From the sequence record MW760841.1: a stretch of 64,000 nucleotides of DNA. One strand, written 5' to 3'. Under the pieces are notes generated by a model. The model did no database searches. It was not told the DNA's origin and saw nothing but the letters and a program-made list of their open reading frames with translations. Shown one piece after another: positions 4,539 to 32,313 of this stretch. Made by a program: the position numbers and the translations under genes. Position 1 is the first letter of the stretch; each line of letters starts with the position of its first letter.

Positions 4539-4543
4539 TTAAC

Positions 4544-5548
4544 ATGTCATTTACATTACGTTGGAAAAACCCAAACGTAATTGCGACGGTAGTGAACATC
4601 TACCGCGACACCAAGGATATTGTGGTGTCTGCGTTACCTGCCCCTATCGCGACCCTAACGAATGGGGAAACCGAATGGAAGGATAACACCGCATTACCGG
4701 GTGGGACTTACTGGTACCTGGCGACGGTTACCGCCAACGGTAAGACCGTGGCGACCTCCAGTCAGAAATACGTGATCGAAGTCAAGCGCGGGATTGGCCC
4801 GATGACCTTCCTGTACGGCGATGACCGTCTGGGGTTCTTAGGTGCCGTGCCGTACGAAGAACAATGGCAACCAGGACAAATGCCCGCGTCCTTCCTGTCG
4901 ATGTTCCCGACGCTATTGACTGACCGAGTAGCATTGTACAAGTTCTCCCGTAATGGGAAGATGCTGTATCTGCTCTCTAACGTCAGCCAGTTCCCAGGGT
5001 TTGCTAACTGGGCGTCGCTGTACCAGGCAGGTCTGGTGTATGGGACGGATGATTTTGGGCCAGTGGGTGGGCACGGTACACTGCCGGACACACTACAAAA
5101 CGCCAAGATTATTCACAATGGGGATACCTACCGCATGCGGTTGATGCGTGGTCTGTCTGGACACAAAGACCCGGCCGCGTTCCCGTTTGTGGAGGCGTAC
5201 AATCAGAAAGACCACGATGCAGTGGCGGCATTAACTGCGCCGTGTGAATTCAACGACCTGATCTATACCATGGTAAGTGAAGTACCGGTGAAACAACGTT
5301 GGGCAAACTGGAACAACCTGAGCTATACGTACGTTGGGCGTAACGACATCACGTCTGGTATCGCGTACTACACCGGCGGAACGGTGTGTATGGAACACGA
5401 TACGGCTATTGACCGTGTACTGCACCGCGCACGTTTCGATAACACCGGCGCAACGGTATCTCCCCCGGTTTCCTGCATCCAGAAAATTAACTACTGCACG
5501 GCAGCCCAGCAGGGTCGTTACTACCCCGTGTTTGAACTGGTGGAATAA
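4544..5548 (+). CDS. Cassette 1 gene B: FN3-like N-domain + GPGP/GYFG-type domain, virion protein
   Basis: MSFTLRWKNPN...IYR...W.D...Y.Y pattern; LY.AG.VYG; YYPVFEL. Confidence 0.72.
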   Translation: MSFTLRWKNPNVIATVVNIYRDTKDIVVSALPAPIATLTNGETEWKDNTALPGGTYWYLATVTANGKTVATSSQKYVIEVKRGIGPMTFLYGDDRLGFLGAVPYEEQWQPGQMPASFLSMFPTLLTDRVALYKFSRNGKMLYLLSNVSQFPGFANWASLYQAGLVYGTDDFGPVGGHGTLPDTLQNAKIIHNGDTYRMRLMRGLSGHKDPAAFPFVEAYNQKDHDAVAALTAPCEFNDLIYTMVSEVPVKQRWANWNNLSYTYVGRNDITSGIAYYTGGTVCMEHDTAIDRVLHRARFDNTGATVSPPVSCIQKINYCTAAQQGRYYPVFELVE

Positions 5549-12329: not shown

Positions 12330-13214
12330 ATGGGCGTTAAATTAAAATGGGATTTGCAAGTTACCCAGAATCTGGATGCCATTGAAATCTATCGGAGCAA
12401 CAACCCCATCGATTTCGCTAATCCTGGCACCCCATTGGTGACACTGGCCGGGACGGCAACCGAGTTCGAAGACTTCACCGTCAAGAACAAGAACCTCTAT
12501 TATTACCGCATCGCGGCTAAGAAAGGAGCAGAACGCGGTTGGGGTGAAAACCAATTAACCGGTTACTTCTCAGAAACTGGGCCAGGACGTGCCTATCCGC
12601 TACGTGGGGATTGGAACGCGGGGTTAATGGATATCCTCCCGCAGGCGAACCTTATCACCATGCCGGACTTCTTTGCGAAGCTGCCACAGTTAAGTAAATT
12701 CGGCGGCGTATCCGCAGGTATTACTAGCTGGTACAAAACCTGTTACAAAGGTAAGGTCATCTTTGTGCCGAGTGGTCCAGTGCTGACGGCGTCCTGGAGC
12801 GAGCTGTACGGGGCGAAGGCTATCTTCGGTGAAGACAGTTCGGTGCAGTTACCGAACGGTACCTTAGCCAGCGGTAAGCTGACCGTTGACATCAACGGTC
12901 TGACGTACATCGTGCGTTGTCCGAAACTGTCACCACTTCCCTACTCTACGTACCTAACGACACAAGACCAAACCCTCAACAGTGAGTGGCGTGATACTGT
13001 GTCGCGTTTGTGTCTGCTGTCCACCGAACCACAACCGGGAGCTAAGTCACGTCTGTTTGACTTGGGCGCAGCACCGGCGACGGTATTGGGTGGCCACATT
13101 CAAACTACCGTTAACTGTTCGGCGATATTGCCTGCTGCACCGGGTGCTTTATCTTACGGTGCGATGGCCAGTCGCTATGCCGTCGGGCTTGTGCTCGAAC
13201 TCGTTATGCCTTAA
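12330..13214 (+). CDS. Cassette 3 gene C
   Basis: MGVKLKWDLQ; GPGRAYPLRGDWNAG; YKGKVIFVP. Confidence 0.72.
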   Translation: MGVKLKWDLQVTQNLDAIEIYRSNNPIDFANPGTPLVTLAGTATEFEDFTVKNKNLYYYRIAAKKGAERGWGENQLTGYFSETGPGRAYPLRGDWNAGLMDILPQANLITMPDFFAKLPQLSKFGGVSAGITSWYKTCYKGKVIFVPSGPVLTASWSELYGAKAIFGEDSSVQLPNGTLASGKLTVDINGLTYIVRCPKLSPLPYSTYLTTQDQTLNSEWRDTVSRLCLLSTEPQPGAKSRLFDLGAAPATVLGGHIQTTVNCSAILPAAPGALSYGAMASRYAVGLVLELVMP

Positions 13215-13225
13215 AGGAGAAAAAC

Positions 13226-14752
13226 ATGGGGCTTTACAGCAAGAAGTCACTGGAGCTACTGTGCCAGTTAATCGAGCGGGATAATCCCCAGTTCACCAAT
13301 CCTCTTGATGCGCAAAGCATCATGGTGTTGAGTGGTCCACTCACATCCGGTTTAGGCTCCAGCGGGCGCAATGCCCGCATTATTCTCAACGGTCGTACCG
13401 GGACAGGTATCGTGGGGAAAAAGGAGTTCTTTTATGACCGCATTAACTTAACGCGGTTGTTTAACGGCATCACTGTCGTTTTCGATGCAGCTGGAAGTTC
13501 GAAGACATATGCAGATTTGCTCCCTGCGCTCAATGAGCAATACGGGATGGCTTTAGAGGCAGCAGACCTCAGCAACGGAACCACTAAACTTCCGTTCGGC
13601 TATACCCCAACACAGGTGACACTTAACATCGCTACTACCTCGGTGGGCTACACCGGTAGTTTAAGTGTGACTTGGACACGTAAGCCCGTAGGTGTGTATC
13701 CGGACTCTGGGCCGGGTACGAAGGTATTGTTGATTGGTTCGATTGAAGAGGAAGGGTACTTCGGTACTGTCTCCGAAGCTGAACTGTTCGGTGCCCCGGC
13801 AATCGTATCGAAAATCAACGAAGGAATGGCGAGCCCCGCAGGGACATTGACGGCTATCCCCGCTACCCGACTGTGGTATAAGTTTGCGCGAGATGGGAAG
13901 ATTCTGTACCTCGCCAACTATAACCAAATCACCATCAAGTGGCAAGAGCTGTATGTCCGTGGTGCAGCCTATGAAACTGACCAACACGAAGACAAGCAGT
14001 TCCCGACGGACGGTGTGTTCGTTGCCCAACGTCCGGTTATCCGGAAGATGGAGAATGGACGTGCCTGGTATCTGTCGCCGTGTATGCCACGCTTGGCAGA
14101 ATCAGACCCGTGGGATTATCAGGCGGTTAACCAGACTCCTGACCCAACCGGTGATGTTGCCCGGTTGTTTGCCAAGATTGTAGCAAGCGGTGGGTTTGCC
14201 ACCGGGGAGTGGGACGGGCAGAGTATCGACGCCACTGGCTTCTGGTTCTCCACGACGTCGATGAAAGAACCTGCGAAAGCCTTCGGGAGTAGCATGACCG
14301 GCATCCAGCAAAACATGTACGACAAAGCGACCTACAATGGTGGCTGGCGTCCGATGCTGGAACTGGCTGATTTGGATAAAATCGCTATTCCGTTGGAAGA
14401 GTTCATTGGGGAACCCGATGGGGTGTTGCGTAAACCACGGTTTACCATCAGTCCAGATACCGGCGAAGTGTTGCTGATTGTCAGTGATGTCGCCTGGGAA
14501 ATCTCGGGTGCGTTGGATAAGCCACTGATTGACATGGTTCTCGAACCTCCGTTGAATACGAAGGAAATCAGTTGGGAACGTGACCTGCCAACCCCACTGA
14601 TGCAAGTCGTCTCTGAACCCCTGTTATCAGTGAACACCTACGGTTGGAAAAAACTATTGCGAGCACCCGTGACCCGGATTACGTCCGAGTACAAGGAAGT
14701 GGTGGCCTACGACCTGAGAACGGCCGATGGCGAACTCGATGGCTTTAAATAA
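13226..14752 (+). CDS. Cassette 4 gene A
   Basis: MGLYS, SGRNA, GPGTKVLLIG..EEGYFG, WRPMLEL, C-terminal DGELDGFK. Confidence 0.75.
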   Translation: MGLYSKKSLELLCQLIERDNPQFTNPLDAQSIMVLSGPLTSGLGSSGRNARIILNGRTGTGIVGKKEFFYDRINLTRLFNGITVVFDAAGSSKTYADLLPALNEQYGMALEAADLSNGTTKLPFGYTPTQVTLNIATTSVGYTGSLSVTWTRKPVGVYPDSGPGTKVLLIGSIEEEGYFGTVSEAELFGAPAIVSKINEGMASPAGTLTAIPATRLWYKFARDGKILYLANYNQITIKWQELYVRGAAYETDQHEDKQFPTDGVFVAQRPVIRKMENGRAWYLSPCMPRLAESDPWDYQAVNQTPDPTGDVARLFAKIVASGGFATGEWDGQSIDATGFWFSTTSMKEPAKAFGSSMTGIQQNMYDKATYNGGWRPMLELADLDKIAIPLEEFIGEPDGVLRKPRFTISPDTGEVLLIVSDVAWEISGALDKPLIDMVLEPPLNTKEISWERDLPTPLMQVVSEPLLSVNTYGWKKLLRAPVTRITSEYKEVVAYDLRTADGELDGFK

Positions 14753-18992: not shown

Positions 18993-19703
18993 TCAGACGT
19001 TTAACATCGGAATCTGATTAACCGGTGGGTGCAACGGTTGAGACGGCCAGAACTTGTCTAAGGCGTTAATAGCACGCTTGATGTTCTGATAGCGCATGTT
19101 CACACATTTGCAGGTGGTGATGTCCCAATGCTCGTGTGACGGGATGGCTGGTTCGATATCGTTACGGAAGAACAGATAGTTACGTGCGTAATTCAACGTA
19201 ATGTCCGACACCGACGGATAGCGATACTGATGCGGGTCATCGTTCTTGTCCGCATACGACGGCCAACCAAAGTTACTGACGGCTTCGTAGAACGACTTGG
19301 CGATGAACTTATCCACGCCCATCATTTCCATAATCCGCAGGAACATCAAATCCGCAAACTCTTTGGTGGACGCCCGCGACAGATTTCCTTCCGGGGTGTC
19401 AGGATACGGCACCGGGGTTGGGGTCTTCTGATACAACATGTCATGGACACACGCCGCAGCAGCCCACGGGCCATCCGGATGCAGCATCGGTTGTAACACA
19501 GGCGGGATACTGGCCAGGTCGGTGACAAAGCCCGCTGGGACCGTGACATACATCTGCTTGTCCGGATGCACACCCGACTGGTACACCATCTCATCCATCC
19601 CCGGATGGTCACGGTACAACGTACGTAACGTGAACGGAATGTAGAAGTCTTCGGTTACGATGAACCACTGCTTCTCCAGCACTTTATATTTCAGCTCTAA
19701 CAT
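18993..19703 (-). CDS. DUF1353-family protein
   Basis: VPAGFVTDLASIP...AAACVHDMLY...ADLMF..IM..MGV motif set typical of DUF1353. Confidence 0.75.
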   Translation of the reverse strand: MLELKYKVLEKQWFIVTEDFYIPFTLRTLYRDHPGMDEMVYQSGVHPDKQMYVTVPAGFVTDLASIPPVLQPMLHPDGPWAAAACVHDMLYQKTPTPVPYPDTPEGNLSRASTKEFADLMFLRIMEMMGVDKFIAKSFYEAVSNFGWPSYADKNDDPHQYRYPSVSDITLNYARNYLFFRNDIEPAIPSHEHWDITTCKCVNMRYQNIKRAINALDKFWPSQPLHPPVNQIPMLNV

Positions 19704-19872: not shown

Positions 19873-20475
19873 TTATTTAGAACATACGCCTACCTTGATA
19901 GCGTAATCGCCCATCTCACGGTAGACACGGTCGTACCAGCCGTACGTGAACTCTTCGTTCTGTACACGCTTCTCAGAAATCTCGGTGTAGTACGCCACCT
20001 GGTGTGAGGTCAGCGCAAACATCAGACGGTTAAAGCCATCCAGGCCGCGAGCTTTCAGGAAGCCGTTCAGTGCGTTCATGGTCAGCGTACCGATACCGCC
20101 ATCAGCGTCGATGTCAGCATACAGTTTGCCCTGACGGTTCAGTACGTTCAGGATACGTTGCAGGGATTTAATGCAGTTCGCACGACCGGCATTGATACCG
20201 AAGTCGAACATACGGTCAGCCAGCAGTGGATTCCACGCGAGAATCTGGTCGAGACGCATACGGTCCCACCACATTTTCTTGTAGATGTCGATTGCCATTG
20301 CCTGGGTCAGGTCACGCATGTTGCCTTTGTAACCGTACTCAGTAGCAGTGGCTTTGGTGATACCCCAGATGGTTTCACCACCCAGGTCGTTCGGGTTGTT
20401 TACATAACCCGCTTCGATGTTAACCTTGGCACGGATAATGCCTTCCATGCTCCAACGGTCTACGGCCATTGCCAT
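19873..20475 (-). CDS. Glycoside hydrolase family 108 lysozyme with PG-binding C-domain (endolysin candidate)
   Basis: EAGYVNNPNDLGGETIWGIT, MFDFGINAG, DADGGIGTLT, EFTYGWYDR; GAGGA RBS. Confidence 0.88.
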   Translation of the reverse strand: MAMAVDRWSMEGIIRAKVNIEAGYVNNPNDLGGETIWGITKATATEYGYKGNMRDLTQAMAIDIYKKMWWDRMRLDQILAWNPLLADRMFDFGINAGRANCIKSLQRILNVLNRQGKLYADIDADGGIGTLTMNALNGFLKARGLDGFNRLMFALTSHQVAYYTEISEKRVQNEEFTYGWYDRVYREMGDYAIKVGVCSK

Positions 20476-20531
20476 ATATAGTTCCTCGTACGTTAATGAA
20501 TGTCATACGAAGCGTAAAAAAAATAAAGAGA

Positions 20532-20551
20532 GTGTGCCCCGAAGGGCACAC
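20532..20551 (-). terminator. Terminator closing the tail-fibre/radical-SAM unit
   Basis: GTGTGCCC-CGAA-GGGCACAC (UUCG loop on - strand) followed by a T-rich tract on the - strand. Confidence 0.8.
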
Positions 20552-20555
20552 CGTC

Positions 20556-21212
20556 TTACGCCAAGTTCTCTTCCTTGGCCATTGCCATCACCGCAGTGAA
20601 GTTATTCTGCTCAGCCAGCGTGCGAAGTTTTTGTTTCTTCACATTCAGCGCCATGTGCAGTTCGTTATCACGTTGGATAATCGCCGCATACAGCTCTTTC
20701 ACGTTTGACAGGTCAAACGGCTCGACTGGGGTGTTCATCGCATCAATCCAATACATCGGATCAACACCGGACTGGATATAGCCAGCCAGCGCTGTACGCG
20801 ATTTCTCGGTAGCCTGATAACGATGTTCACCAACCACGATGTCTTCGTAGCGCAGGTTTTCGTAACGGGTGTTTAACTCACCCAGAATACGGTTAAACTC
20901 ACGCCACAAATGCCCTACCGTGGACGCCAACCCTTTACGGATATCATCCAGCGGCAGTTCCAGTACATCGGCGATAAAGTCTTTGGTCTTCTTCATGATG
21001 AAGTTGACTTCGACATCTGACAGGTCGTAACCTTTCAACGCAGCCATTGCCGCTTTGTCGGTCATCCCGTTTAACAGATGGTAATGCAGCAGGGTACAGA
21101 ACCCCTGCTTGGTAGCATCTTCGGTACGGTGAATCGCCTGGTAATTGCCATGACGGTCAATTGGCGCACCCATTTCGAAGTAACGACGTTTTATTTCGTC
21201 ATTAGTAAGCAT
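20556..21212 (-). CDS. DUF4376-like protein (tail-fibre assembly associated)
   Basis: C-terminal half YQATEKSRTAL...YWIDAMNTPV..DL..VKELYAAI..R...H...KQ resembles the DUF4376 pattern; recognised by eye. Confidence 0.55.
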   Translation of the reverse strand: MLTNDEIKRRYFEMGAPIDRHGNYQAIHRTEDATKQGFCTLLHYHLLNGMTDKAAMAALKGYDLSDVEVNFIMKKTKDFIADVLELPLDDIRKGLASTVGHLWREFNRILGELNTRYENLRYEDIVVGEHRYQATEKSRTALAGYIQSGVDPMYWIDAMNTPVEPFDLSNVKELYAAIIQRDNELHMALNVKKQKLRTLAEQNNFTAVMAMAKEENLA

Positions 21213-21748
21213 TCATTCGCTCCTACCAGCCCCAGTTCCATTGCCAGCCCGAAGTCGAACATTTGGAAATCGACTTCTAACTCATCACCGAAGTGGAAGT
21301 TAAGCAGCTTGGCATCGTCCTGGTTCTGTTCCATGAAACTAAACATCATGTGCATCTCTTCCCCGAAGGCATCATACTGCTCCAGGGAACGACAGGCACG
21401 GACGCGAATCTCAGGCCAGTTCATGGCGAGACCCAGTAAGTTATCGGCATCCATATTGCGCGTAGAACGGCGCAGGATTTCGATTTTGTGGCGCGGGAAG
21501 GTTTTGATGCGTTCCTCGACACCGGGGTTACGCTTCTCCACTTCCTGCAACGAGAGATGACCACCTTCCAGACCGGACAGCGGAACAATCACGTTCAGCC
21601 CAAAGCGAACACACAGGGCTTCCACTTCCTTGGAGAAGTCTTCAGCCGGTACAATCGCGTGAACATTGTACAGCTTATGTTTACGGAGAAACAAGTCTAC
21701 CAGGTGAAGACTACGCTTCGTAAAATTGTGTATCAGCAGGGACTTCAT
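21191..21748 (-). CDS. Hypothetical protein (185 aa) in the radical SAM cluster
   Basis: Overlaps both neighbours (operonic); no recognised motif. Confidence 0.65.
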   Translation of the reverse strand: MKSLLIHNFTKRSLHLVDLFLRKHKLYNVHAIVPAEDFSKEVEALCVRFGLNVIVPLSGLEGGHLSLQEVEKRNPGVEERIKTFPRHKIEILRRSTRNMDADNLLGLAMNWPEIRVRACRSLEQYDAFGEEMHMMFSFMEQNQDDAKLLNFHFGDELEVDFQMFDFGLAMELGLVGANECLLMTK

Positions 21749-23051
21749 TCGCAGGTGCTCCTAATTGAGTTTTCTTTTCTGCCTCAGAGCGCGCACGTAC
21801 ACAGGATACGCAGTAGCACTGGGTCTTATCGTTCAGGTCGGTGTAGCGGATTGTGCCGGTCTTCTGATAGAAGTATTCGGCGACAAGCAGCTTAGCCGTC
21901 GTCCAACCACACTGGCGACGTTCGCCATGGTATTCGCGACGAGCTTCCAGTTCACCATCACCGTTTTCGTACGCCGCCGCAGCACAGCTACCACAGGCGT
22001 GTTTCATCGGGCAACCCAGGCAAGTTTCTGGGTAGTTGGTGTACTGCTTATTGATTTCACCTAACAGCTTACCGCCGTCGGTGTTCACAATCTCACGTCC
22101 CACTAACTCGCCAATGGCCTGGCGGGTGGTAACAGTTGACATGAAGCGGTTACAACCGTAAATCTTACGGTCGAAGCCCAGGCAGGTCATGTGCGTAACG
22201 GTACCGCAGAATGGACGCACACGCTCAGGGTCGAGACGGGTTGCTTCATCATCCAGCAGTTTCTGACGCCAATCCGGGTCCCACGTTGCCATGAAGTCCA
22301 GACCATCTGGGAAGATGTGAGTCAAACGGTTACGCGGGTCTTTCTGCAAGCCCTTCTCAAACCAGTAGTCAATCACGTCCATCATCTGGTTCGCGATTTC
22401 CAGCGCGGAGCTACGTGGCAGTACGTCTTCGTACGTTACGTTACCGGACAGGGTGCCACCGCCGGTGACGTCAATCAGGTGCTTCATCGACGCGCCGTAT
22501 TTCGGCAGCGTGTCAGCAGTAAAGGTGGCCTTCACACCCAGTTCGAGGATACCCACGGACTTGAGGTAGTTATAGCCTTTCATCGCCTTCTCGTACGACC
22601 CTTCACGCGTAGTGGTGAAGATACGGTACTTATCGTGCACTTCCGGCAGACCATCGATGGATACGCCGATAGACAGTCTGTCTTTCCAGCGTTCGATGAT
22701 TTCACGGTTCAACGGTTTGTCGAACAGCGTACCGTTCGTGGAGATAGAGAAGATGACATCACGCCCATCACGGGCGGCCAGTTCTTCTGCGGCTTCAAAC
22801 ACACCCAGCAGAATCTTCGGCTGCATCATTGGTTCACCACCGATGATGTCGATAATCACTTCCACGTTCGGGAGGTGACGGTCACGGTCGAAGCACGCAT
22901 GGATGAAGTCTACCGCATCCGCCACTTTGTTGTTACGCGGATACTTACGTTCGTAGCAATACTCACAGTCGAGATTGCACGACAGGTTGGTCACGACCTG
23001 ATAGGTCTTTGTGATTTTCGGCTCTACGGCCGGAATGAAACTATCGCGCAT
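21711..23051 (-). CDS. Radical SAM/SPASM peptide maturase (Cxxx-repeat target type)
   Basis: CNLDCEYC (CxxxCxxC), IIGGEP, ISTNGT, SIDG..HD..R; SPASM FCG..C..GC and CLGCPMKHACGSC...C. Confidence 0.92.
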   Translation of the reverse strand: MRDSFIPAVEPKITKTYQVVTNLSCNLDCEYCYERKYPRNNKVADAVDFIHACFDRDRHLPNVEVIIDIIGGEPMMQPKILLGVFEAAEELAARDGRDVIFSISTNGTLFDKPLNREIIERWKDRLSIGVSIDGLPEVHDKYRIFTTTREGSYEKAMKGYNYLKSVGILELGVKATFTADTLPKYGASMKHLIDVTGGGTLSGNVTYEDVLPRSSALEIANQMMDVIDYWFEKGLQKDPRNRLTHIFPDGLDFMATWDPDWRQKLLDDEATRLDPERVRPFCGTVTHMTCLGFDRKIYGCNRFMSTVTTRQAIGELVGREIVNTDGGKLLGEINKQYTNYPETCLGCPMKHACGSCAAAAYENGDGELEARREYHGERRQCGWTTAKLLVAEYFYQKTGTIRYTDLNDKTQCYCVSCVRARSEAEKKTQLGAPANEVPADTQFYEA

Positions 23052-23946
23052 TGTTTAGCCCCGCCTGAATAGTTCGATTGATGTACTTGTACGCGTCAAA
23101 GCCAATCACTTCGGCCAGACGGTTACACCCAGAGTCAATGGCATCAACTGCGTTCTGACTCTGCTCAAAAGTCGAATCCGACTTCACCCACACCAGGCTG
23201 CTGCAATCGTCACAATGCTGAGCGAAGAACTTATTGATGCTCAGGGGAATGTGTGAATCGTTGATACGATTCAGATAGGTCAGCTGCTCGTGCATTTTGT
23301 TGTAGCCGTACATGAAGTTCATTACATGGTCAGGCGACAGCGGTTTAGGCATGAAGTTATCGAACATCAAACGGAAGCCGTTAAACCCGTAGTGATACGT
23401 AGCGCGATGCAGTTCCAGTAAATCGTCCTGCCAGCGCTTATCACCCAGCTGCTCACGGGTTACGACAGACCACAGGCTCACATTGTTGAGAGCGTGCAGG
23501 GTATCAAACGCCTCAAAGCGACCTTCTTCTGCAATCCGCAGTAAAGGACGTTCTGATTTAGCGTACCCGTCAAACGAGACGAAGATACGGTCAAGCTGGG
23601 AGAGTAGCGGAAGCTGCTCAGGGCTCAGACGCAACGCGTTAGTGTACATCTCGTGTTGCAGGTGCGGGTAACGTTCTTTCAGTTCTGCCATGAACTCCTG
23701 GATTTTCTTGAAAGCCAACAGTGGCTCTCCGCCTGTCCAGTTAATCTGGCGGATTGACGGATGCTTTTCCAGCACCTCGAACAGTTTATCTTTCTGGATG
23801 TCGCGCGCAACGTCCTTGACATCCATATACCCCGCACCACCACAGAAGCTACAATCTAAGTTGCACTTCGAGGTGGTAACGATAGACAGTTCCATGGGAG
23901 TGTCTGTCGGGTCGCGACGAATGGCCGACACAGCTTCTTCACTCAT
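23041..23946 (-). CDS. Second radical SAM enzyme (301 aa, short C-terminal Cys motif)
   Basis: CNLDCSFC, WTGGEPLL, MYTNA, VSFDG; C-terminal CDDC...GC. Confidence 0.88.
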   Translation of the reverse strand: MSEEAVSAIRRDPTDTPMELSIVTTSKCNLDCSFCGGAGYMDVKDVARDIQKDKLFEVLEKHPSIRQINWTGGEPLLAFKKIQEFMAELKERYPHLQHEMYTNALRLSPEQLPLLSQLDRIFVSFDGYAKSERPLLRIAEEGRFEAFDTLHALNNVSLWSVVTREQLGDKRWQDDLLELHRATYHYGFNGFRLMFDNFMPKPLSPDHVMNFMYGYNKMHEQLTYLNRINDSHIPLSINKFFAQHCDDCSSLVWVKSDSTFEQSQNAVDAIDSGCNRLAEVIGFDAYKYINRTIQAGLNNAR

Positions 23947-23967
23947 TGCAGGTTTACTCCAGTATTT

Positions 23968-24855
23968 TTATTCGAATGTCAGTGCAAACAGTGGGTCTTC
24001 TTTGATGTCCACACCCTGCTTCAATACGAAGGGGTCGTGGTAAGCAGCAAGAATCTTGTTCAGCACTTCATGACGCTCGTTAATGCGTTCCAGGTCATCG
24101 AGAGTAACCTTACGTTCCAGGATTGCACTAGCGGCCACTTGCTCTTCAACGCTCAGGTCAACCTTCTGCATTAAGAAGCTCACCAGCTTCGTTAAGTCTG
24201 CTTCGGTTCCCGGCGCTTCACCGTACTTCCACTGCACCAGATACTGCATCCACGGTTTGCGGATACGTTTGGTGATTTCGTGTTCGTCAGTGATAGCAAC
24301 GAATTTCTTTTCCGCGTGCAGCCATTTAAACTTATAGCTGAATGCTAAGAGGTCGAGCATCTTGTGGATGCCCAGGCTTTCGTAGCCTTCGATTGGGTAA
24401 TAGATTTCTACCCCTTCGTAATGCTCGGTGTCCGCAGGCACTTGCGAATACCAGAACGGCAGGGAACTCGGGTAGTCCCAGCTCCATTCACGACGCACCA
24501 TTGGCTTGAGGCCGGTTTCAGCAAACGGAGTCAACAGCATTTCCAGATCGCCACACTGGTTCAGCACACCGTCGCTGAAGAAGTATTTACGGTCAATGAA
24601 CTTGCCGTTGATTTCCTGCTCGCCGGTGTTCAGGTAGATATGCTCAACCTTGTGCCCAGCCAACATGTAATCGTTCAGCACTTCGAAGTTCTTCGGATTG
24701 ATTAACTCACGCCCACGCACCTTCGGCCATTCAGCAGGCAACTGCGTAATCAACAGGATTTCGCCTGTCAAGTGATACTTTACGCTGTCGTAAATACTGA
24801 CTTGTAACGGAAAGTTCTGCGTTGTGCGGAACGCAAGGTGCATATCGTTCTTCAT
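23968..24855 (-). CDS. Hypothetical protein (295 aa) between the peptides and the radical SAM genes
   Basis: GGGGAG RBS, tight spacing, long ORF; no recognised family. Confidence 0.7.
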   Translation of the reverse strand: MKNDMHLAFRTTQNFPLQVSIYDSVKYHLTGEILLITQLPAEWPKVRGRELINPKNFEVLNDYMLAGHKVEHIYLNTGEQEINGKFIDRKYFFSDGVLNQCGDLEMLLTPFAETGLKPMVRREWSWDYPSSLPFWYSQVPADTEHYEGVEIYYPIEGYESLGIHKMLDLLAFSYKFKWLHAEKKFVAITDEHEITKRIRKPWMQYLVQWKYGEAPGTEADLTKLVSFLMQKVDLSVEEQVAASAILERKVTLDDLERINERHEVLNKILAAYHDPFVLKQGVDIKEDPLFALTFE

Positions 24856-24867
24856 TTAAAACTCCCC

Positions 24868-25074
24868 TTAGCGGTTTCCTGCGCCGTGACTACAGCCGCC
24901 GCTGCACGTCCAGCTGCAAGAGCCACCACAATTGTAATGCGATAATGGGAGACCCGCCAGGTTGTTGGTGGTGCTTACCGTGCCACTGTTACGAATGTAA
25001 TCGTTCGCATCGTCGGTACGGATATAGCCTTCCACTTGCGCCAGCTTGTCTCTGACAAGTTTAAGTGATATCAC
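24868..25074 (-). CDS. Cys-rich peptide 3 (68 aa, 4 Cys; GTG start at 25074)
   Basis: MISLKLVRDKLAQVE matches the peptide 1 leader; core CGGSCSWTCSGGCS; GGGGG RBS-like run upstream. Confidence 0.75.
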   Translation of the reverse strand: MISLKLVRDKLAQVEGYIRTDDANDYIRNSGTVSTTNNLAGLPLSHYNCGGSCSWTCSGGCSHGAGNR

Positions 25075-25121
25075 AGTAACCCCCAAGTGTGTAAAAAAGA
25101 TGACGAGGGTCGGCTACACTG

Positions 25122-25517
25122 TTAGCGCATCGGTCCAGAGCATCCTGAGCAACCGGAGCAGCTTGAGCTGCACGATGAACTACAACCGCCTGTACAAGTG
25201 CCCGAGCAACCGCTAGAACAGCTACCAGAACAGCCTGAACAGCCCGTACACGTCGACGAACAGCCTGACGTACAACTCGCAGAGCAACTGGCCCCACAAG
25301 TTCCTGATGCCGAGCCTGAGCATCCGCCGGAGCATGAGGAGCAGCTCCAACTACAGGTACCACCGCAGTCATAGTGTTCACGGGAGAAACCCCCGAAGCG
25401 CTGTGAGTTGTTGGTGCCTTTGTTGCGGATGTAGGTTTGCACACCGGCTGTGTTCTTCAATGACGCTGCATCGATAGCATTAAGCCGGTTTTGAATATCT
25501 TTAAGGTTGATTGCCAT
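25122..25517 (-). CDS. Cys-rich (Cxxx)n precursor peptide 2 (131 aa, 20 Cys)
   Basis: 50-aa Cys-free leader + 81-aa core made almost entirely of C/S/G/T; GGGGA RBS. Confidence 0.88.
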   Translation of the reverse strand: MAINLKDIQNRLNAIDAASLKNTAGVQTYIRNKGTNNSQRFGGFSREHYDCGGTCSWSCSSCSGGCSGSASGTCGASCSASCTSGCSSTCTGCSGCSGSCSSGCSGTCTGGCSSSCSSSCSGCSGCSGPMR

Positions 25518-25526
25518 GTTTTTCCC

Positions 25527-25910
25527 CTACGGCCCCGAACAGCCGGAACAGCCACCGCAGCCGGAACCACAGGAACCAGAACAGCCGCTACATTTACCAG
25601 AGCAGCTACCAGAGCAACTCCCGGAACAACCGGAACAACCTGAACAGCCGGTAGAACACCCGCCTGTACATGCACCGGTACACGTTGAGGTACAAGTACC
25701 CGAACAACTCGTACACGATGCGGAACAACCATTAGAGCACGACCAGCTACACGTTCCACCACAATCCAACTGAGCAGGCGTCCAACCAGCGAAGCGATCC
25801 GCTGCGTTAAAAGCCCCTGATGCTACTTGGGCATCAACCCGAGGTCCAGTTGCGTAAGTGTTCTCCACGCTTTGCAGGCGGTCGCGTACGTTTTTTAATG
25901 AGATTGCCAT
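25527..25910 (-). CDS. Cys-rich (Cxxx)n precursor peptide 1 (127 aa, 21 Cys)
   Basis: 49-aa Cys-free leader + 78-aa core of Cxxx/Cxx units; AAGGA RBS. Confidence 0.88.
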   Translation of the reverse strand: MAISLKNVRDRLQSVENTYATGPRVDAQVASGAFNAADRFAGWTPAQLDCGGTCSWSCSNGCSASCTSCSGTCTSTCTGACTGGCSTGCSGCSGCSGSCSGSCSGKCSGCSGSCGSGCGGCSGCSGP

Positions 25911-25972
25911 ACGTTTCCTTTAATAAATAAGGGAGGACACTGCCATATAGACAGGTCCTCGCGTAAAGAGAC

Positions 25973-27178
25973 TTATTTGGTACCTGCTTCCGCCTGTACG
26001 TCGTCGCGAGATGTGAGGCTCGAGTTGACGTGTACCGCAGCTTGTACAACACCGCCGTACTGTTTGTGGAGGTATTTCGGGTGCGGGTTATCGGCGTTGA
26101 TGTGGTTCGTCAGGTTCTGAGACACCGTCGAGATACCCGAGGTGTTATTCGCAACCTGCTGTTTCAACGCGGTCAAATCCTGTTGCAACTGCTGAATCTG
26201 CTGCTGGGTATCCTGGCCTGAGTTTTCCAGGTCAGTGACACGCTGATTCAACCCGGCAATCACCTGATTCTGGTCAGTGACCATCTTCTGGAGTTGCGCG
26301 ACCAGGTCGTTCAGATTCGCCATCTGCAACGCCATACGCTGATAGTTCTGCGCCACTGCGTTCAGCTGATCATTCCAGGAACCCAGAGCCGCGACAATCG
26401 CGTCGATGCGTTGGTTGATAGCCGTGTCTGCCGCTTTCAGATCCCCAATGTCTGCAAGGACAGCGTTAATCGCCGTTTGCACACCTTGAATCAAAGCACG
26501 GATTTCGGTTTCCGTCAGACCGTTGGCCTGATGGATATCCAGACTGTGAACGTTACCTTGAGCGTTGATGTGATTATTCAGTGCAGCCATAAACTGCGTC
26601 TGCATATTCTCAATCAACGATTTCAGCTGTTCAAGCTGGACCGTGTTCCCGGCGTTGATGCTATCCTTGATACCTGCCAGTTCAGTGATGATGTATTCAA
26701 AACCGAAGATGTCGCCGATGTCTTTAAAGGACGGAGCAGCCGCAAAAGTATCTGGAACGTTACGCAGGTCTTTGAAGTCGACCACCCGGTCATCGAGGTT
26801 CGCATCAATAATCGCTTGCTTAATCGCAGCAATCACCGCTGACTGTGGACCACCGACAACCTGGGTAGAGGCAATGACGTCTGTCGGGATGGCGCTGTTT
26901 GTGACAACGACCGCCATACAGACTTCTTTGTTACCGGCAAGTTTTTGGTAAACGGGATGGGCAAAGATTAACTCGTAATCCACCCCACGTTTGTAGGTCG
27001 TGTTAGGCGCATTCGCGGGACGCAGTTTAAAGTCATCTGCGTAGAACGGCCCTGCTGGAAAGGCAAACGCACGGTTTACTTTCCCACCACCCAACACAAT
27101 AGGAATGCTGACGGCATTGCTCGTCATCTTCCCCGTCAAGTCGAGCGGGTACTGAAATAAAATATCTGGCATGGCCAA
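25973..27178 (-). CDS. Tail-fibre-family protein with long coiled coil (401 aa)
   Basis: N-terminal YPLDLTG..SN..GPFY..GVDYEL domain shared with the three long fibres; heptad-rich Q/L segment; HINADNPHP. Confidence 0.72.
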   Translation of the reverse strand: MAMPDILFQYPLDLTGKMTSNAVSIPIVLGGGKVNRAFAFPAGPFYADDFKLRPANAPNTTYKRGVDYELIFAHPVYQKLAGNKEVCMAVVVTNSAIPTDVIASTQVVGGPQSAVIAAIKQAIIDANLDDRVVDFKDLRNVPDTFAAAPSFKDIGDIFGFEYIITELAGIKDSINAGNTVQLEQLKSLIENMQTQFMAALNNHINAQGNVHSLDIHQANGLTETEIRALIQGVQTAINAVLADIGDLKAADTAINQRIDAIVAALGSWNDQLNAVAQNYQRMALQMANLNDLVAQLQKMVTDQNQVIAGLNQRVTDLENSGQDTQQQIQQLQQDLTALKQQVANNTSGISTVSQNLTNHINADNPHPKYLHKQYGGVVQAAVHVNSSLTSRDDVQAEAGTK

Positions 27179-27210
27179 ACTCCCTTATCAGGACATCCTT
27201 GTCCCCGTGT

Positions 27211-30200
27211 TTATAACCTCGGCATAAGATTAACGGCGATGTCAGTCGCGGTTTCCAGCCCATTCAGACTCACCCACTTCGTCGCCACAATCATCGAGGT
27301 GGCATCCTCAGCAACAATTACCGGTGGAGAGCACGAACAGTTCCCAGCCGAAACGATAGGCCAGAAGTTCTTCGTGGTCACAGGCAGAGCGATGGTCTCC
27401 GCATTAATAACCACCCCCGGCATCTCATTAGCAATGAGGTAGTACGGCATCGGAGTAGATGGGCCCGACGACGCCAGTAACGTTTCAGTGGTGGTTGCAG
27501 AGTCGTAATCGTAGATAGCAAAAGCCACCCAATTACTGGCGCTGCTTAACCAGTCGCCCGGTGTCCACATGCCGTCAATCTGCATCAACATCTGTTGGTT
27601 CGGCGTCACGGTAAAGGCCATCGTGGCACTGCTTCCCCGCGTCACTGTCATGGTTCTGCCGTTGAGCTTGAAGTCAATCGTCCCATTACCCCCAGACTTC
27701 GGTAAGTAAATTCTTACACGAATCTCGGATTTGGTTGGGGTGATTTTCGGCAAGCAACTGTACATTACGTTTGACGGCGGACGAGTAAACGTATGCCCCA
27801 CCCAGGTTAGCCCAGCGGTTGCACCTTCTGGGTTGTCACCGGATGTGATGGCTGCCGTTTTCGGCAACGGGAAGAACGAGGCTGCCATGTTACCAATTTC
27901 ACCCGGTGCGAACACCTTCGGCGTTTTGATAATCGTAGCCCGACGCTCAGAACGTCTCTGCGGTGAAATCACCGAGTTACTGTAACGCGCATCCAGATAC
28001 GAAGGCACCGAGGTCGGTTGCATCAGCGGTTCTTTGTGCAGCAAACCTAGAGGCGATAACGACAAGTCAGTGTGACGGTCAACGTCGTGACGGTATTCTG
28101 TCCCGGCGTGTTCCAGCATCTGCTTCAACCCACCCATGCGTTTCACTTTCTCAAGCTGGGTAGCAATGATGCGTGATGCATCAGTGGTCACGGTCCCGAG
28201 ATACAGACGGGTGTCCGAATCGGCTTGACGTGCATCCAGCAGTTGGTACTGCGGAACGTTATTCACCAACACGACATGCACGTAGAAGATGCGGTTCTGG
28301 TAGTTGCCTGGGAAGGCAGCTTTCAAATCCACCGAGTACGGTTGTGCCGTGTAATAGGTTGCCCCGATACGCCAGGAGGTGGCTTCCGTCATGTAGAAGT
28401 TCCACCCTTCGGCGGTCTTCACCCCTGCCAGAATCTCCACCGGTGAACCACTCGGTGTGTACATTCCCGCTGCCATCCAATCTGCAAGCGGTGCAGAGTT
28501 ACCCGCACAGAACGCCGGACCAATCGCCGTCAGGTTAGTGAGGCACAACTTGTCTTTCAGCGGCACCATATACGACGGGTCGTAATTGGTTCGGTGCATC
28601 CGGAGATGACCCGAGGTCGCCACGAACGACGTGGTAGCGTCGTATACAAGTTCCAGGTTTAACGCACCCGTGTTCCCCACTTGGTTAACCGAGAGGACGT
28701 TTGGAATGTACAGGATACCTTTCTTGTCCGTGCCTTCACAAAGGATAGACTGACCATAACGACGACCACGGCCACTGAAATCCGTAATGGAGATATTGAC
28801 AGTGGTGTAGTCCAGGTCATTCGTCGACCAGATACGCGATACCGTGCTGACCGGGAAGGTCACATCGCCCGTTACAGAGACTGACGGCGTTACACGGAAC
28901 ATGTAGTAGTCAACGAGGGTCTTACCGTTACGCACAGCCATACACGCCGCCTGTACCATCCACACCGCGTTAGCGGCTTTAGGACGGAACGTGAACAGCG
29001 AGATGAGCAGACGGTCAGCAGCATTGATACGCTCGAACGCATAGCCATTTGCAGAACCGGAACCCGGCGACGACTTCACGATGCCAATCAACTTGTTCCA
29101 TTCGGTCGAAGAGATGTTCAGCGTGGCCGCCGTTGGGGCAGCACCGACAGCCTGATAGTTCTGGCTACCAGCGGCATCCCAATAGCACCCGTCTAACGTA
29201 CCGTCATTAATAGCGGCGGTACACACATACGGCATGGTGGTCAACTTGAGATACGTGTTCCAGTCAAAATCCGTACGGTTGTTCGTCGGGCCGAACCCGC
29301 CATAGGCTGGGTCATACTTCGTGTCAGGGTCACACTCGACCAGAATAGCCTTGTTAGCCTGTACCGGACTCAACAGATAACTGTTTGAACCTACAAATAC
29401 CGGCGAACTCATGGACATCTCGTAGACTGACCCACGACCTTGGTTAAAGGCCCAGGCAGCAGCCTGCGGAGCACCCGGCTTCGACTTGCCTGACAAGAAG
29501 TCAAACGCGTCTAATCCGTTCGGTAACTTACCGGTGCTACAGCCCGCCATCGAAGTGGTTTCAGGTTGGTCCCAGAACACGGACAGGACATCGTCGCTGA
29601 ACGACACGTAGGTGCGGTTATTCGCCGACCCGTACGACCACTTCACATCCTGGTTGTAGTCGTTAATCTTCACGCCGGTGGCGAAGGTGATTCCCGTCTC
29701 ATCTACCACCATCGGGAAGATTTCCGGGTTATCAATAGCGATTGCTTTAGTTTCGAAGTCGAAAGTAAAGGAAGTCGGCCAGCGTCTGAATCCGGTACTT
29801 CCGGAGGCAGTGGCTAACCAGACCGACACGCAGAACCCCATGCGGAACTGGGTGTTCTTCACGACACCTGCGCGGTTCGCGTGGGGGCCATGTTGAATGT
29901 TCTTACCCTGTGTCCAGTAATCCCACCCAGCTTGGGTGAAATAGTGGGTACCGTCACGTTGGGTAATGCGGTCAGCCAGCGTTGCTTTCAGTAAGGTATA
30001 GTCACCGTTAGTACCGACGCCACCCGTCAGCGGGAAGTTCGTGAAGGTTTCACCTGGCTTACCTGACCATACACCCACACAGTAGCGTGTGTTGTCCAGC
30101 AGTGCTTTGATAAGGTAGACCTTATCTTTATACACAACCAATTGCATGGTTAAAGCGTCGATGGTAAGTGGGCGCGTGGCACCATCGCTGTTTTCCGTCG

Positions 30201-32229
30201 GAGGCGTGAACTCAAACACCGCGGTGTGCTTAGCATGGTTCAGCGTGCCATTGAACAGCACCAGATAATACTTACCGTCAGAACCGTAAGCAATCATCCC
30301 GTCATCACCCGGCAGAAGAATCTTCACGAGTCTTACACCTGGCGTCAACCCTACAGGCTTATAAGCCACGGATGTCTGTTGGCGGTTATTCAGTAGCCCC
30401 TCATCCGTCATCTCCGCATACGCGTAATAGATGTTGTCAGTGCCCGCGATGCCGTCGGAGGCATTACGTAACACATACAGTGTTCCGGCCTCTTTCCGCA
30501 CGATACCTAAACGACCGTTGTTGTCCAGGTTCTTCTGGTAGCCCGCAAAGTTACCCACTGTCGGAATTGGCAGGAAGCCTGGGTTACCGAACTGCGAACC
30601 GGCCGTTGTCCAGGCAGGCAGCAGCTTGTTGGCAATCTCCTTAACGGTGTTGATTTTCTGCTGAACGTTGTAACCTTGTTTCGCAGTCGCCACCTTATCC
30701 GTGGTAGCGTCAATCGCATCCCACAGCTGCACCAACCCTGCCACGGTATCAGAAGCGGTCGGTACGCCCGTCAGGTCAGCAAAGGTGTGCGTGTGGTCAG
30801 ACAACGCTTTGTTGTTCAGAACCGCCCTAATGGCGTTCGTGACCGGTTTCTCGTTCGGTCCCGTATTCTGCACATTCCCCAGACCGATATCCGCAGCCGT
30901 CAGGGTCAGTTCCTGATCCCCAGTGGTTGGGTTGGTAACAAACCCTTTGCCGTTGACTTTGTACGTCGCATCGACGTAGTTGTCCAACGTGGTTTTCAGA
31001 GCCGTCACCGCAGCCTGAGAAATCGCAGCACCGGCGGCGATGTTCGCTGAAATGGACGTCACCAGCAGCAGACCCGGAACGGTGTCGGTCGCCGTCGGGA
31101 CAACCGTCGACATGTTGACCGGTGAGTAGTCTTTCCCGCTCCCGTAAATCTTCACGGTTTCCGTGGACGAGAAATAAGCGTTGGCAGGCAACAGCTTCAC
31201 CGCTGACAGGTATAAAGAAACCATGTCCGGGGTAATCAGGTAGGCACCGTTAAAGATAGGAGCCTTCGCGCCAGAGAGCGCATACATGGCGTTCAAGCCC
31301 GAGGTGACTTCTACCCCGATACCTGGTTCGTTCTTATCCGCATCTGCCGTAATGGTAATCGGCTTGGTGGTGGTGATAAGGAACTTGTCGCCCTGCAAGG
31401 TGATGACATGGCTGGAGTCTGCGGTACGGAAGGTCAATGCTCCGTTGCTCAGAACCTTCATGCGTCCACGTAGTTCACCCAAGACCACCGGCATCAGTGT
31501 GTCGATATGGGTTTGCTGGATACCGCTGCGCTTCATCAGATCGACCAGTTCGTCGATAGTCTTCCCGAAGGCTTTGGTGGCATCAATCGCTTTGGTCAGT
31601 ACCTTTAAGGCCCCGACTTCCTCAGCAGTGTATTGGTGCGCGTTCTTCACCTTGTGGTGCTGGTACATGTTGTCGTCGAAAATCTTCTTGCCGTTGGCGA
31701 AGATTAAATCGGAGACCTCGGAATAGGCTTCATCCAAATCACCCGCACGCTCAACGATACCCAGACGAATCGCATCCAGTGCCGCAACGACGTCGTCACG
31801 CAGGATAGCTTCTTCCAGGCTGGTTGGTGGATCAATCGGAGCCACCACCGGTGCGTACTTCATCAGTTCAGACCAGTCCACATTACGTGGGTCTTTCAGG
31901 TCTGGCTTAACCAGGTACTTCCCGATTTCCGATTGCGGTACGCGGTATTCACGCCCAACGGAATAGATGGTGTAATCACATGCCGTTTCCGTGAGCAGCA
32001 TGATGCCGCCGAAGATTTGATCCTGATAGGCTTCGGCTGCTTCTTTGAAATAGTAGCAAAGGTAGTAATCCAACCCCTCCGTCAATGGACGTGGGTTCGG
32101 GCCAGTGCTAGTCAGCTTGAACCCAGTGCGGTAGAACGGCCCCTCGGGCGGTATTACAGCATTAAAGCGGTTCGGATACGTCTCTAGCTTTAGCGTCCCA
32201 CTGAACGGGGCTGGGGCTGTCGTCGACAT
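27211..32229 (-). CDS. Long tail fibre protein (about 1672 aa; start moved to ATG 32229)
   Basis: CAGGAG RBS before MSTT; PPEGPFY..L..GLDY, ADIGLGNVQNT, HTHTF..TAS..AGLVQL fibre motifs. Confidence 0.8.
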   Translation of the reverse strand: MSTTAPAPFSGTLKLETYPNRFNAVIPPEGPFYRTGFKLTSTGPNPRPLTEGLDYYLCYYFKEAAEAYQDQIFGGIMLLTETACDYTIYSVGREYRVPQSEIGKYLVKPDLKDPRNVDWSELMKYAPVVAPIDPPTSLEEAILRDDVVAALDAIRLGIVERAGDLDEAYSEVSDLIFANGKKIFDDNMYQHHKVKNAHQYTAEEVGALKVLTKAIDATKAFGKTIDELVDLMKRSGIQQTHIDTLMPVVLGELRGRMKVLSNGALTFRTADSSHVITLQGDKFLITTTKPITITADADKNEPGIGVEVTSGLNAMYALSGAKAPIFNGAYLITPDMVSLYLSAVKLLPANAYFSSTETVKIYGSGKDYSPVNMSTVVPTATDTVPGLLLVTSISANIAAGAAISQAAVTALKTTLDNYVDATYKVNGKGFVTNPTTGDQELTLTAADIGLGNVQNTGPNEKPVTNAIRAVLNNKALSDHTHTFADLTGVPTASDTVAGLVQLWDAIDATTDKVATAKQGYNVQQKINTVKEIANKLLPAWTTAGSQFGNPGFLPIPTVGNFAGYQKNLDNNGRLGIVRKEAGTLYVLRNASDGIAGTDNIYYAYAEMTDEGLLNNRQQTSVAYKPVGLTPGVRLVKILLPGDDGMIAYGSDGKYYLVLFNGTLNHAKHTAVFEFTPPTENSDGATRPLTIDALTMQLVVYKDKVYLIKALLDNTRYCVGVWSGKPGETFTNFPLTGGVGTNGDYTLLKATLADRITQRDGTHYFTQAGWDYWTQGKNIQHGPHANRAGVVKNTQFRMGFCVSVWLATASGSTGFRRWPTSFTFDFETKAIAIDNPEIFPMVVDETGITFATGVKINDYNQDVKWSYGSANNRTYVSFSDDVLSVFWDQPETTSMAGCSTGKLPNGLDAFDFLSGKSKPGAPQAAAWAFNQGRGSVYEMSMSSPVFVGSNSYLLSPVQANKAILVECDPDTKYDPAYGGFGPTNNRTDFDWNTYLKLTTMPYVCTAAINDGTLDGCYWDAAGSQNYQAVGAAPTAATLNISSTEWNKLIGIVKSSPGSGSANGYAFERINAADRLLISLFTFRPKAANAVWMVQAACMAVRNGKTLVDYYMFRVTPSVSVTGDVTFPVSTVSRIWSTNDLDYTTVNISITDFSGRGRRYGQSILCEGTDKKGILYIPNVLSVNQVGNTGALNLELVYDATTSFVATSGHLRMHRTNYDPSYMVPLKDKLCLTNLTAIGPAFCAGNSAPLADWMAAGMYTPSGSPVEILAGVKTAEGWNFYMTEATSWRIGATYYTAQPYSVDLKAAFPGNYQNRIFYVHVVLVNNVPQYQLLDARQADSDTRLYLGTVTTDASRIIATQLEKVKRMGGLKQMLEHAGTEYRHDVDRHTDLSLSPLGLLHKEPLMQPTSVPSYLDARYSNSVISPQRRSERRATIIKTPKVFAPGEIGNMAASFFPLPKTAAITSGDNPEGATAGLTWVGHTFTRPPSNVMYSCLPKITPTKSEIRVRIYLPKSGGNGTIDFKLNGRTMTVTRGSSATMAFTVTPNQQMLMQIDGMWTPGDWLSSASNWVAFAIYDYDSATTTETLLASSGPSTPMPYYLIANEMPGVVINAETIALPVTTKNFWPIVSAGNCSCSPPVIVAEDATSMIVATKWVSLNGLETATDIAVNLMPRL

Positions 32230-32260
32230 GAATAACACTCCTGCTCTTAAATAAAACGGA

Positions 32261-32313
32261 TACCGCCCCCGAAAGGGCGGTAGCTTGCGGACTAAGCACG
32301 CCCGCAAGCGTGC
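32261..32313 (-). terminator. Double stem-loop between tail-fibre genes
   Basis: TACCGCCC/GGGCGGTA and GCACGC/GCGTGC stems; weak T-tract. Confidence 0.5.

Follow-up and report, generated by a model that had tools for sequence, protein, structure and literature searches.

Cysteine-packed proteins, two radical SAM enzymes and a novel protein family in phage tail-fibre regions: a candidate cross-linking module

This report concerns a cassette of eight genes on the minus strand of a 64,000-nucleotide stretch of sequence record MW760841.1 (the window, to which unprefixed positions refer). Three open reading frames (ORFs) for Cys-rich polypeptides, pep1, pep2 and pep3, are accompanied by two radical S-adenosylmethionine (SAM) enzymes, termed radical SAM A and radical SAM B, by two genes termed orfX and orfY and by a DUF4376 gene, and we consider here whether the products could act together in the maturation of tail fibres. 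The features are as follows.

25527-25910, minus strand: pep1, an ORF of 127 amino acids with 21 Cys
25122-25517, minus strand: pep2, an ORF of 131 amino acids with 20 Cys, paralogue of pep1
24868-25086, minus strand: pep3, an ORF of 68-72 amino acids with 4 Cys, a short paralogue
23968-24855, minus strand: orfX, 295 amino acids, matching phrog_8030
23041-23946, minus strand: radical SAM B, 301 amino acids, Pfam PF04055 at 9e-14
21711-23051, minus strand: radical SAM A, with a SPASM domain, 446 amino acids, matching the NCBIfam PapB and TIGR04115 profiles below cut-off
21191-21748, minus strand: orfY, 185 amino acids, matching phrog_7988
20556-21212, minus strand: DUF4376 gene, 218 amino acids, Pfam PF14301
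20531-20552, minus strand: intrinsic terminator, GGTGTGCCC-TTCG-GGGCACACT and then a T-run (9-bp stem, UUCG loop), ending the unit
25973-32307, minus strand: upstream baseplate/fibre-type proteins of 401 and 1698 amino acids, with phrog_2163 in common

The eight genes on one strand, their Cys counts, their tight or overlapping spacing and the UUCG terminator had been described in a first-pass annotation of this DNA and are all present at the positions listed, with intergenic gaps of 9-47 nt and overlaps of 11-38 nt. Positions 20400-26000 are 100% identical to the Erwinia phages pEa_SNUABM_4 and pEa_SNUABM_8 (about 249 kb, of the SPN3US-like group), and the same region is 94% identical in vB_EamM_ChrisDB, 84% in Caitlin and about 76% in phiEaH2, Asesino and Stratton. 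Homologues of radical SAM A at 60-80% identity occur across SPN3US-like jumbo phages of Salmonella, Escherichia, Cronobacter and Erwinia. A scan for sigma-70 promoters gave fewer matches than shuffled sequence and is uninformative for this phage. We note a hairpin, GAGGAC...GTCCTC followed by CCTTATTTATT, at 25925-25958 on the minus strand between the gene for the 401-amino-acid fibre paralogue and pep1; it might attenuate or punctuate transcription, and the terminator scan made no call for it because its loop is too long.

The product of pep1 has an N-terminal region of about 49 amino acids, with a predicted helix at residues 5-20, and a 78-amino-acid core that carries the 21 Cys. The cores of pep1 and pep2 consist almost entirely of C, S, G and T, with about 27% Cys and no Asp or Glu, and their Cys recur at Cx3 spacing 13-14 times and at Cx2 spacing 5-6 times. 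In pep3 the N-terminal region is that of its paralogues and the core begins with CGGSCSWTC and is then truncated; the likely start of this gene, judged from a GGGGG ribosome-binding site in front of it, is the GTG at 25074, giving 68 amino acids. A single PHROG, phrog_6085, is matched by all three (E 4e-26 to 6e-53; pep1 3.8e-45, pep2 6.4e-53). By the criteria of sequence evolution, the Cys frame is the true coding frame of pep1-3, is under strong purifying selection and is more than a product of chance, because the ratio of non-synonymous to synonymous substitution rates (dN/dS) in this frame is 0.03-0.16 with synonymous sites saturated (0.09 for pep1 against phiEaH2, 0.03 for the pep2 core), and because every Cys column is at least 90% conserved in sets of 26 and 23 distinct orthologues (21 of 21 columns in the 26 for pep1), while 44 of the approximately 59 non-Cys core columns vary in the same sets. 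The pep3 core differs from that of phiEaH2 by 12 synonymous and no non-synonymous changes. The N-terminal regions, at a dN/dS of 0.11-0.19, are conserved on a par with the cores. Orthologues of pep3 are kept in phiEaH2, SPN3US and CR5. The one in Cronobacter phage CR5 (L004 4960-5169; loci compared with the window carry L numbers) has lost most of its cysteines, reading 'CNGSCSWTSSGGAKAVTWPS', and the third paralogue may therefore not need a ladder of Cys. Against the TIGR04114 and TIGR04117 models, pep2 gave weak matches of 14.5 and 15.4 bits, under the cut-offs of 20 and 50, and pep1 and pep3 gave none. An AlphaFold2 (AF2) model of pep1 from its single sequence was of low confidence, with a predicted local distance difference test score (pLDDT) of 45.6, and only the N-terminal helix was predicted; a beta-solenoid or antifreeze-like fold is therefore a conjecture only.

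These genes are frequently misannotated, since repeat DNA of this kind leaves other frames open on both strands. ORFs in the wrong frame or on the wrong strand, or no annotation at all, cover the Cys-rich genes in ChrisDB (gp188), SPN3US (gp166), CR5 (CR5_157) and phiEaH2 (gp087/088), and the GenBank/RefSeq entries concerned are at the following positions.

L001 (ChrisDB), 14115-14372, plus strand: misannotated Cys-rich gene
L003 (SPN3US), 4573-4908: misannotated Cys-rich gene
L004 (CR5), 4377-4589, minus strand: misannotated Cys-rich gene
L002 (phiEaH2), 12659-12904 and 13156-13290: misannotated Cys-rich genes

Such genes are almost never reported by gene callers, and proteomics and genome mining therefore miss them. 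With the first 91 residues of pep1 as query, a word-indexed search recovered one relative from 5.8 billion predicted proteins, and a tblastn search of isolated phages with the fibre junction described below found matches confined to the SPN3US-like group; both results are limited by low-complexity filtering.

Two radical SAM enzymes, one of them with a SPASM domain, had been predicted at the locus, and the 446-amino-acid enzyme does contain a full seven-Cys SPASM domain. In radical SAM A the cluster motif CX3CX2C (C25, C29 and C32) is invariant in two alignments, as are the SPASM residues C282, C300, C344, C347, C353, C356 and C381. Only 24 residues precede the cluster motif and the enzyme therefore has no N-terminal recognition domain. 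Its best NCBIfam match, over the full length, is to PapB (NF047865) at 1.4e-36 and 126.4 bits against a cut-off of 340, and TIGR04115 is matched at 8.1e-33 and 114.4 bits against a cut-off of 350 (residues 16-374 on model positions 5-344). The kinship to bacterial CXXX-repeat systems proposed in the first-pass annotation thus stands in that these are the closest named families, and the family numbers it gave were correct, TIGR04115 being the maturase and TIGR04114 the Cys-rich repeat. Membership of TIGR04115 or PapB is not supported, as the scores fell short of the cut-offs. Bacterial controls pass the TIGR04115 cut-off (L036 with 522 bits, L038 with 440) and four phage-type enzymes score 113-144 bits, so that we regard the phage-type enzymes as a sister clade of the PapB/TIGR04115 enzymes and not as members. 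Weaker NCBIfam matches are to anaerobic sulfatase maturases and cyclophane-forming maturases. The closest solved structure is CteB (5wgg, 1.7e-10), with similarity limited to the radical SAM core.

The cluster motif CX3CX2C of radical SAM B reads CNLDCSFC, and the enzyme also has a GGE motif. Its C-terminal part holds three Cys (C245, C248 and C274) that are invariant and in sequence look like a partial auxiliary-cluster site of the twitch type. The closest solved structure to radical SAM B is SkfB (6efn, 2.4e-5), again with similarity limited to the radical SAM core. The twitch domain of SkfB holds one auxiliary cluster, and the three Cys at the C-terminus of radical SAM B agree with such an arrangement.

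Several further features of the enzymes were seen. In the jumbo phages radical SAM A has a C-terminal extension of about 60 amino acids past the SPASM domain (21711-21900 in the window); it contains CxCxxC and finishes in a conserved 'NEV...QFYEA', and the shorter phage-type enzymes have neither. The annotated starts of SPN3US gp164 (L003 6037-6972) and CR5_154 (L004 6082-6981) are too far downstream and lose the CX3CX2C motif, which is present in frame upstream. The number of enzymes varies: some SPN3US-like contigs have an extra radical SAM B paralogue between the pep1 and pep2 genes (L016 and L024, 3530-4450), three radical SAM genes are present in L005, and in L130 B and A are fused into one enzyme of 680 amino acids. 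A reading of the cassette as a defence system was rejected, as the PADLOC matches reflect generic similarity to the viperin core alone (residues about 24-140, the shared radical SAM core).

The partner gene orfX gave no match in Pfam, NCBIfam or PADLOC, and its profile gave none among PDB sequences. Its AF2 model (pLDDT 87.4, predicted template modelling score 0.81) has a predicted beta-rich N-terminal domain and a helical C-terminal bundle, for which Foldseek found nothing below E=1 in the PDB and only an orthologue in BFVD. The protein is rare, with 42 matches in a profile search of 1.84 billion cluster representatives, and its distant members are conserved mainly over residues about 135-280. 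It adjoins radical SAM A in nearly all phage-type loci, those negative by hidden Markov model being L026, L122 and L128. We take orfX, the signature partner in the phage-type system, to be a new protein family with a confident predicted fold that has no known relative. orfY, which had no Pfam or NCBIfam match and no meaningful match among PDB sequences, is limited to SPN3US-like jumbo phages in the census of loci. The DUF4376 protein reaches the gathering cut-off of PF14301 (4.4e-10, 40.4 bits against 25), had no meaningful match among PDB sequences and is encoded within a fibre module. By analogy with the DUF4376 proteins gp27 of V22 and gp9 of A5, which are experimentally characterized tail-fibre chaperones of Alteromonas phages (PMC7289586, PMC10579305), it is probably a tail-fibre chaperone.

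Upstream of the cassette lie four paralogous baseplate/fibre proteins (401, 1698, 1364 and 1233 amino acids) with an N-terminal domain in common, whose SPN3US orthologues are gp167-gp170. Mass spectrometry has shown SPN3US gp167-171 to be tail proteins, and gp167-gp170 are abundant in particles and lost from tailless particles (PMC5105663, Table S4); gp168 has been named 'baseplate/fiber protein' and belongs to the phiKZ gp131 family (PMC5105663). The products gp161-gp166, which include the DUF4376 protein, orfY, both radical SAM enzymes and orfX, were undetected in SPN3US particles (PMC5105663, Table S4). We conclude that these proteins do not form part of the virion, which would suit factors acting in maturation.

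More distant loci were gathered through homologues of radical SAM A (30-40% identity) in other contigs, orfX being unsuited to an alignment-based search since no stretch of it is sufficiently conserved. The phage-type loci share a core in which one to three radical SAM genes accompany a Cys-rich polypeptide and a homologue of orfX, and this core is always in a tail-fibre region. The pairing of enzymes with Cys-rich peptides, which the first-pass annotation had named as a test of its reading, is strict, and this test does not refute that reading: every related phage locus with enough flanking sequence has a Cys-rich ORF, as do 12 of 12 distant phage-type loci with enough flank, against about 2 of 64 loci with only generic radical SAM similarity. 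Fibre-type proteins of 258-568 amino acids have the Cys-rich stretch as their C-terminal domain in L005, L026, L125, L128 and L130, and these five share with the window peptides the junction 'NA..L.G....YY.C.G.CSW.C'. The 258-amino-acid fibre of L005 has HxH fibre repeats and ends in '...GYYRCSGCSWTCTTNC...', and is followed by orfX and the three radical SAM genes; the fibres of L026, L128 and L130 (498-568 amino acids) have 'Y.C.G.CSW.C...' ends. A second junction type, 'YF[ND]GSG.I.I..GC', links fibres to the repeat in L027, L028 and L135. In L007 and L123 an uncalled 78-amino-acid Cys-rich ORF, 'MSRFF...GCSGCSGSCTGGC...', lies between a 607-amino-acid fibre gene and orfX.

The decisive locus for fibre context is the P2-like L028, in which the gene order is spike (V)-W-J-I, a 384-amino-acid fibre with a Cys-rich C-terminus, orfX, radical SAM A, radical SAM B, sheath and tube. 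The fibre has a tail-collar-fibre N-terminal domain (PF12571, 1.8e-40), and orfX and the radical SAM genes occupy the position of fibre-assembly genes. Loci of the TIGR04115 type with Cys-rich proteins of 160-200 amino acids (L035, L038 and L039) are also prophage regions. L038 passes the TIGR04115 cut-off and is the only one of the three that was scored, the maturases of L035 and L039 being broken by contig ends. Two of the regions (L035 and L038) are tail or tail-lysis modules: L035 contains Tail_P2_I, and a separate 533-amino-acid fibre (Phage_fiber_rpt, 6.8e-9) is encoded just upstream of its 159-amino-acid Cys-rich protein, and in L038 a fibre-like protein occurs with an endolysin. Upstream in L039 lies a gene for a phage cement (head-decoration) protein. 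The supposition that the system is a speciality of lytic jumbo phages did not survive this comparison; as judged from gene content, the core is widespread and extends to P2-like and other prophage tail modules, including Clostridial ones.

Other observations were made in these loci. In a 502-kb metagenome contig (L125 796-1728) the 311-amino-acid protein with the fibre junction and Cys-rich region continues into what looks by eye like a Hint/intein-like autoprocessing domain ('CFVAGTKV...TPEHPLLT...YDLIVEGENHSYLAN...VSH'), which would point to cleavage or ligation where the Cys-rich stretch ends. A DUF1353 protein, labelled 'tail assembly chaperone' in PHROGs, is encoded just beyond the window cassette (18993-19703, minus strand), and a second directly follows the radical SAM genes in the unrelated L028 (9071-9433); this gene may be another recurring accessory. 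The idea that the Trp motif of the junction is tied to radical SAM B was rejected, as the Trp-less systems L007, L028 and L135 keep both enzymes. A scan of IMG/VR with the motif Y.CGG.C.W.C gave true matches, chance matches and an unrelated family of 169-amino-acid proteins ('WWCCHPFEG...FYTCGGFCSWSCMKRYA'), which has the CGG.CSW.C string in common by chance. That family is highly conserved in many viral contigs (L191, L193, L195 and about 35 IMG/VR loci), some labelled as giant-virus bins.

On balance, we propose from gene content and context that in this module two radical SAM enzymes and a novel partner process Cys-packed tail-fibre proteins by cross-linking, probably through thioethers. 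The products of pep1-3 would be small fibre-type proteins in which a helical or docking region at the N-terminus is followed by a Cys-rich rod or tip; their synthesis would take place in the reducing cytoplasm, which would not permit disulfides. Radical SAM A, aided by radical SAM B and orfX, would put covalent cross-links on the regularly spaced Cys, and orfX could be the partner that holds or recognizes the substrate in trans, a role suggested by the lack of a recognition domain in radical SAM A itself. The cross-links would most likely be Cys-S-to-carbon thioethers onto neighbouring Ser, Thr or Gly, turning the C/S/G/T stretch into a rigid element resistant to protease and redox. With the DUF4376 protein as fibre chaperone, the product would then join the baseplate fibres formed by the four upstream paralogues. 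Thioether formation is our best guess because every close relative of the enzymes performs this chemistry; the alpha, beta or gamma carbon of Ser, Thr or Gly is a possible acceptor, and other chemistries are possible.

Known systems offer partial parallels. The TIGR04115 system resembles the window in having a SPASM enzyme without an N-terminal recognition domain next to a polypeptide of Cx2-3 repeats, and the bacterial members retrieved have the same sort of Cys-rich neighbour; to our knowledge, TIGR04115 with TIGR04114/TIGR04117 is defined bioinformatically and has no characterized product. The phage type differs in adding orfX and usually a second radical SAM enzyme, and in having fibre-linked targets that start with 'Y.C.G.CSW.C'. 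The freyrasin maturase PapB, the best-scoring named family, makes several thioethers at repeated Cys motifs in one substrate, as we propose here. CteB (thermocellin) and SkfB (sporulation killing factor), the nearest structures to A and B, respectively, both form Cys thioethers, although their substrates are short secreted peptides. The closest functional analogy is QhpD (TIGR03906), a SPASM enzyme that puts several intra-chain thioethers into the gamma subunit of quinohemoprotein amine dehydrogenase, a small cross-linked protein that is retained as a structural part of a complex. The TIGR03906 profile matched the window enzyme at 2e-18 and that of L005 at 2e-25 over the full length, both far below cut-off, and QhpD differs in using Asp/Glu acceptors and in serving the maturation of a periplasmic enzyme and not of a virion. 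For the accessory genes the parallel is with P2 gpG/Tfa and the DUF4376 chaperones of V22 and A5, whose genes lie directly 3' of the fibre gene and whose products are outside the particle: orfX and the radical SAM genes have the gpG position in L028, and the last gene of the window cassette is a DUF4376 member. Known fibre chaperones act in folding and trimerization only, with no enzymatic radical chemistry described.

A number of points weigh against this proposal. Several of its steps are inferred, namely the use of the Cys-rich proteins as substrates, the thioether chemistry, the presence of pep1-3 in the virion and the role given to orfX. The acceptor that PapB links to Cys is an Asp/Glu or a C-terminal carboxylate and lies C-terminal to the Cys (PMC12373016). 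The pep1 and pep2 cores lack any Cys-X3-Asp/Glu acceptor, and because a PapB-type enzyme needs a carboxylate that these cores do not have, thioether formation is a candidate chemistry only. The products of pep1-3 are free-standing, not fused to fibres, and have no fibre domain in Pfam. A profile of their N-terminal regions without the Cys part matches short proteins encoded at the distant L133 (E 2e-7 to 4e-5) and the long fibres only weakly (L130, E=0.69), so that it is the short junction motif, the Cys-rich domain and gene context that tie the peptides to fibres. The published SPN3US proteome was searched against a database built on annotations without the true Cys-rich ORFs, and the absence of the pep products from it therefore says nothing either way. 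Lastly, short Cys-rich peptides adjoin ATP-binding cassette (ABC) transporter genes in the related bacterial loci L036, L042 and L045, which look like ordinary clusters for peptides that are made on the ribosome and then altered after translation (RiPPs), and a diffusible product is thus possible in principle within this enzyme family.

Such a product is the subject of one alternative, in which the N-terminal 50 amino acids are a leader, the core is cross-linked and an antibacterial or signal peptide is released at lysis. The leader-plus-core layout, the three paralogous precursors and the nearest enzyme families, which are RiPP maturases, agree with this as well as the transporter-linked bacterial loci do, and a lytic phage would not need an exporter. 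However, no peptidase or transporter domain of the kind that defines RiPP clusters was found among the eight cassette proteins in Pfam, NCBIfam or PHROGs, so that a leader peptidase is missing from the cassette; the N-terminal regions are conserved like the cores; the same Cys-rich domain ends 258-568-amino-acid tail fibres in at least five unrelated phages; and the module is always within tail-fibre regions, followed by a fibre-chaperone gene. We therefore consider a free peptide unlikely. Of the RiPP-like reading in the first-pass annotation, the pairing of a maturase with a Cys-rich polypeptide akin to the CXXX-repeat family is retained and the free product is not.

Another possibility, to which we also give little weight, is that the Cys-rich part is a virion or fibre domain that binds metal in the manner of a metallothionein or forms disulfides later, and that the radical SAM enzymes perform chemistry other than thioether formation, such as conversion of Cys/Ser to formylglycine, epimerization or C-C links at the conserved Trp. 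A composition of about 27% Cys with S, G and T and a count of 20-21 Cys do resemble metallothioneins, the domain is borne by fibres with HxH repeats of a metal-binding type, and both the weaker profile matches noted above and the single Trp conserved in the 'CSW.C' motif would suit such chemistries. Against this, the top full-length matches and closest solved relatives are thioether-forming enzymes, and the Trp motif is missing in L007, L028 and L135, which keep both enzymes. An intracellular, non-structural role, such as the buffering of redox state or Fe-S, host takeover or anti-defence, with the position near fibre genes incidental, would agree with the absence of the enzymes and accessory proteins from SPN3US particles and with the likeness in generic fold between the radical SAM cores and prokaryotic viperins, but is very unlikely given that this likeness is confined to the shared core and that linkage to fibre genes is repeated across unrelated phage types, with the domain fused to fibres.

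We tentatively extend the cross-linking proposal beyond the window: tail fibres of many unrelated lineages, among them SPN3US-like jumbo phages, P2-like and other Gram-negative prophages and Clostridial prophages, may carry a C-terminal or accessory 'cysteine ladder' that is stapled covalently before assembly by dedicated radical SAM/SPASM enzymes. Our searches of the literature on radical SAM/SPASM enzymes, ranthipeptides, TIGR04115, jumbo phages, SPN3US and tail fibres found no description of this module. The covalent modifications of phage virion proteins known to us are autocatalytic cross-links, proteolysis and glycosylation. If the proposal is true, a radical enzyme would for the first time be seen to modify a virus structural protein post-translationally, and an enzyme-installed radical cross-link in the organelle of host recognition would be a new category of modification. 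It would give the orphan CXXX-repeat/SPASM radical SAM family a biological role that can be tested, and would explain how a disulfide-like scaffold can be constructed in a reducing cytoplasm. Such fibres could serve as unusually stable scaffolds, of relevance to phage-based applications.

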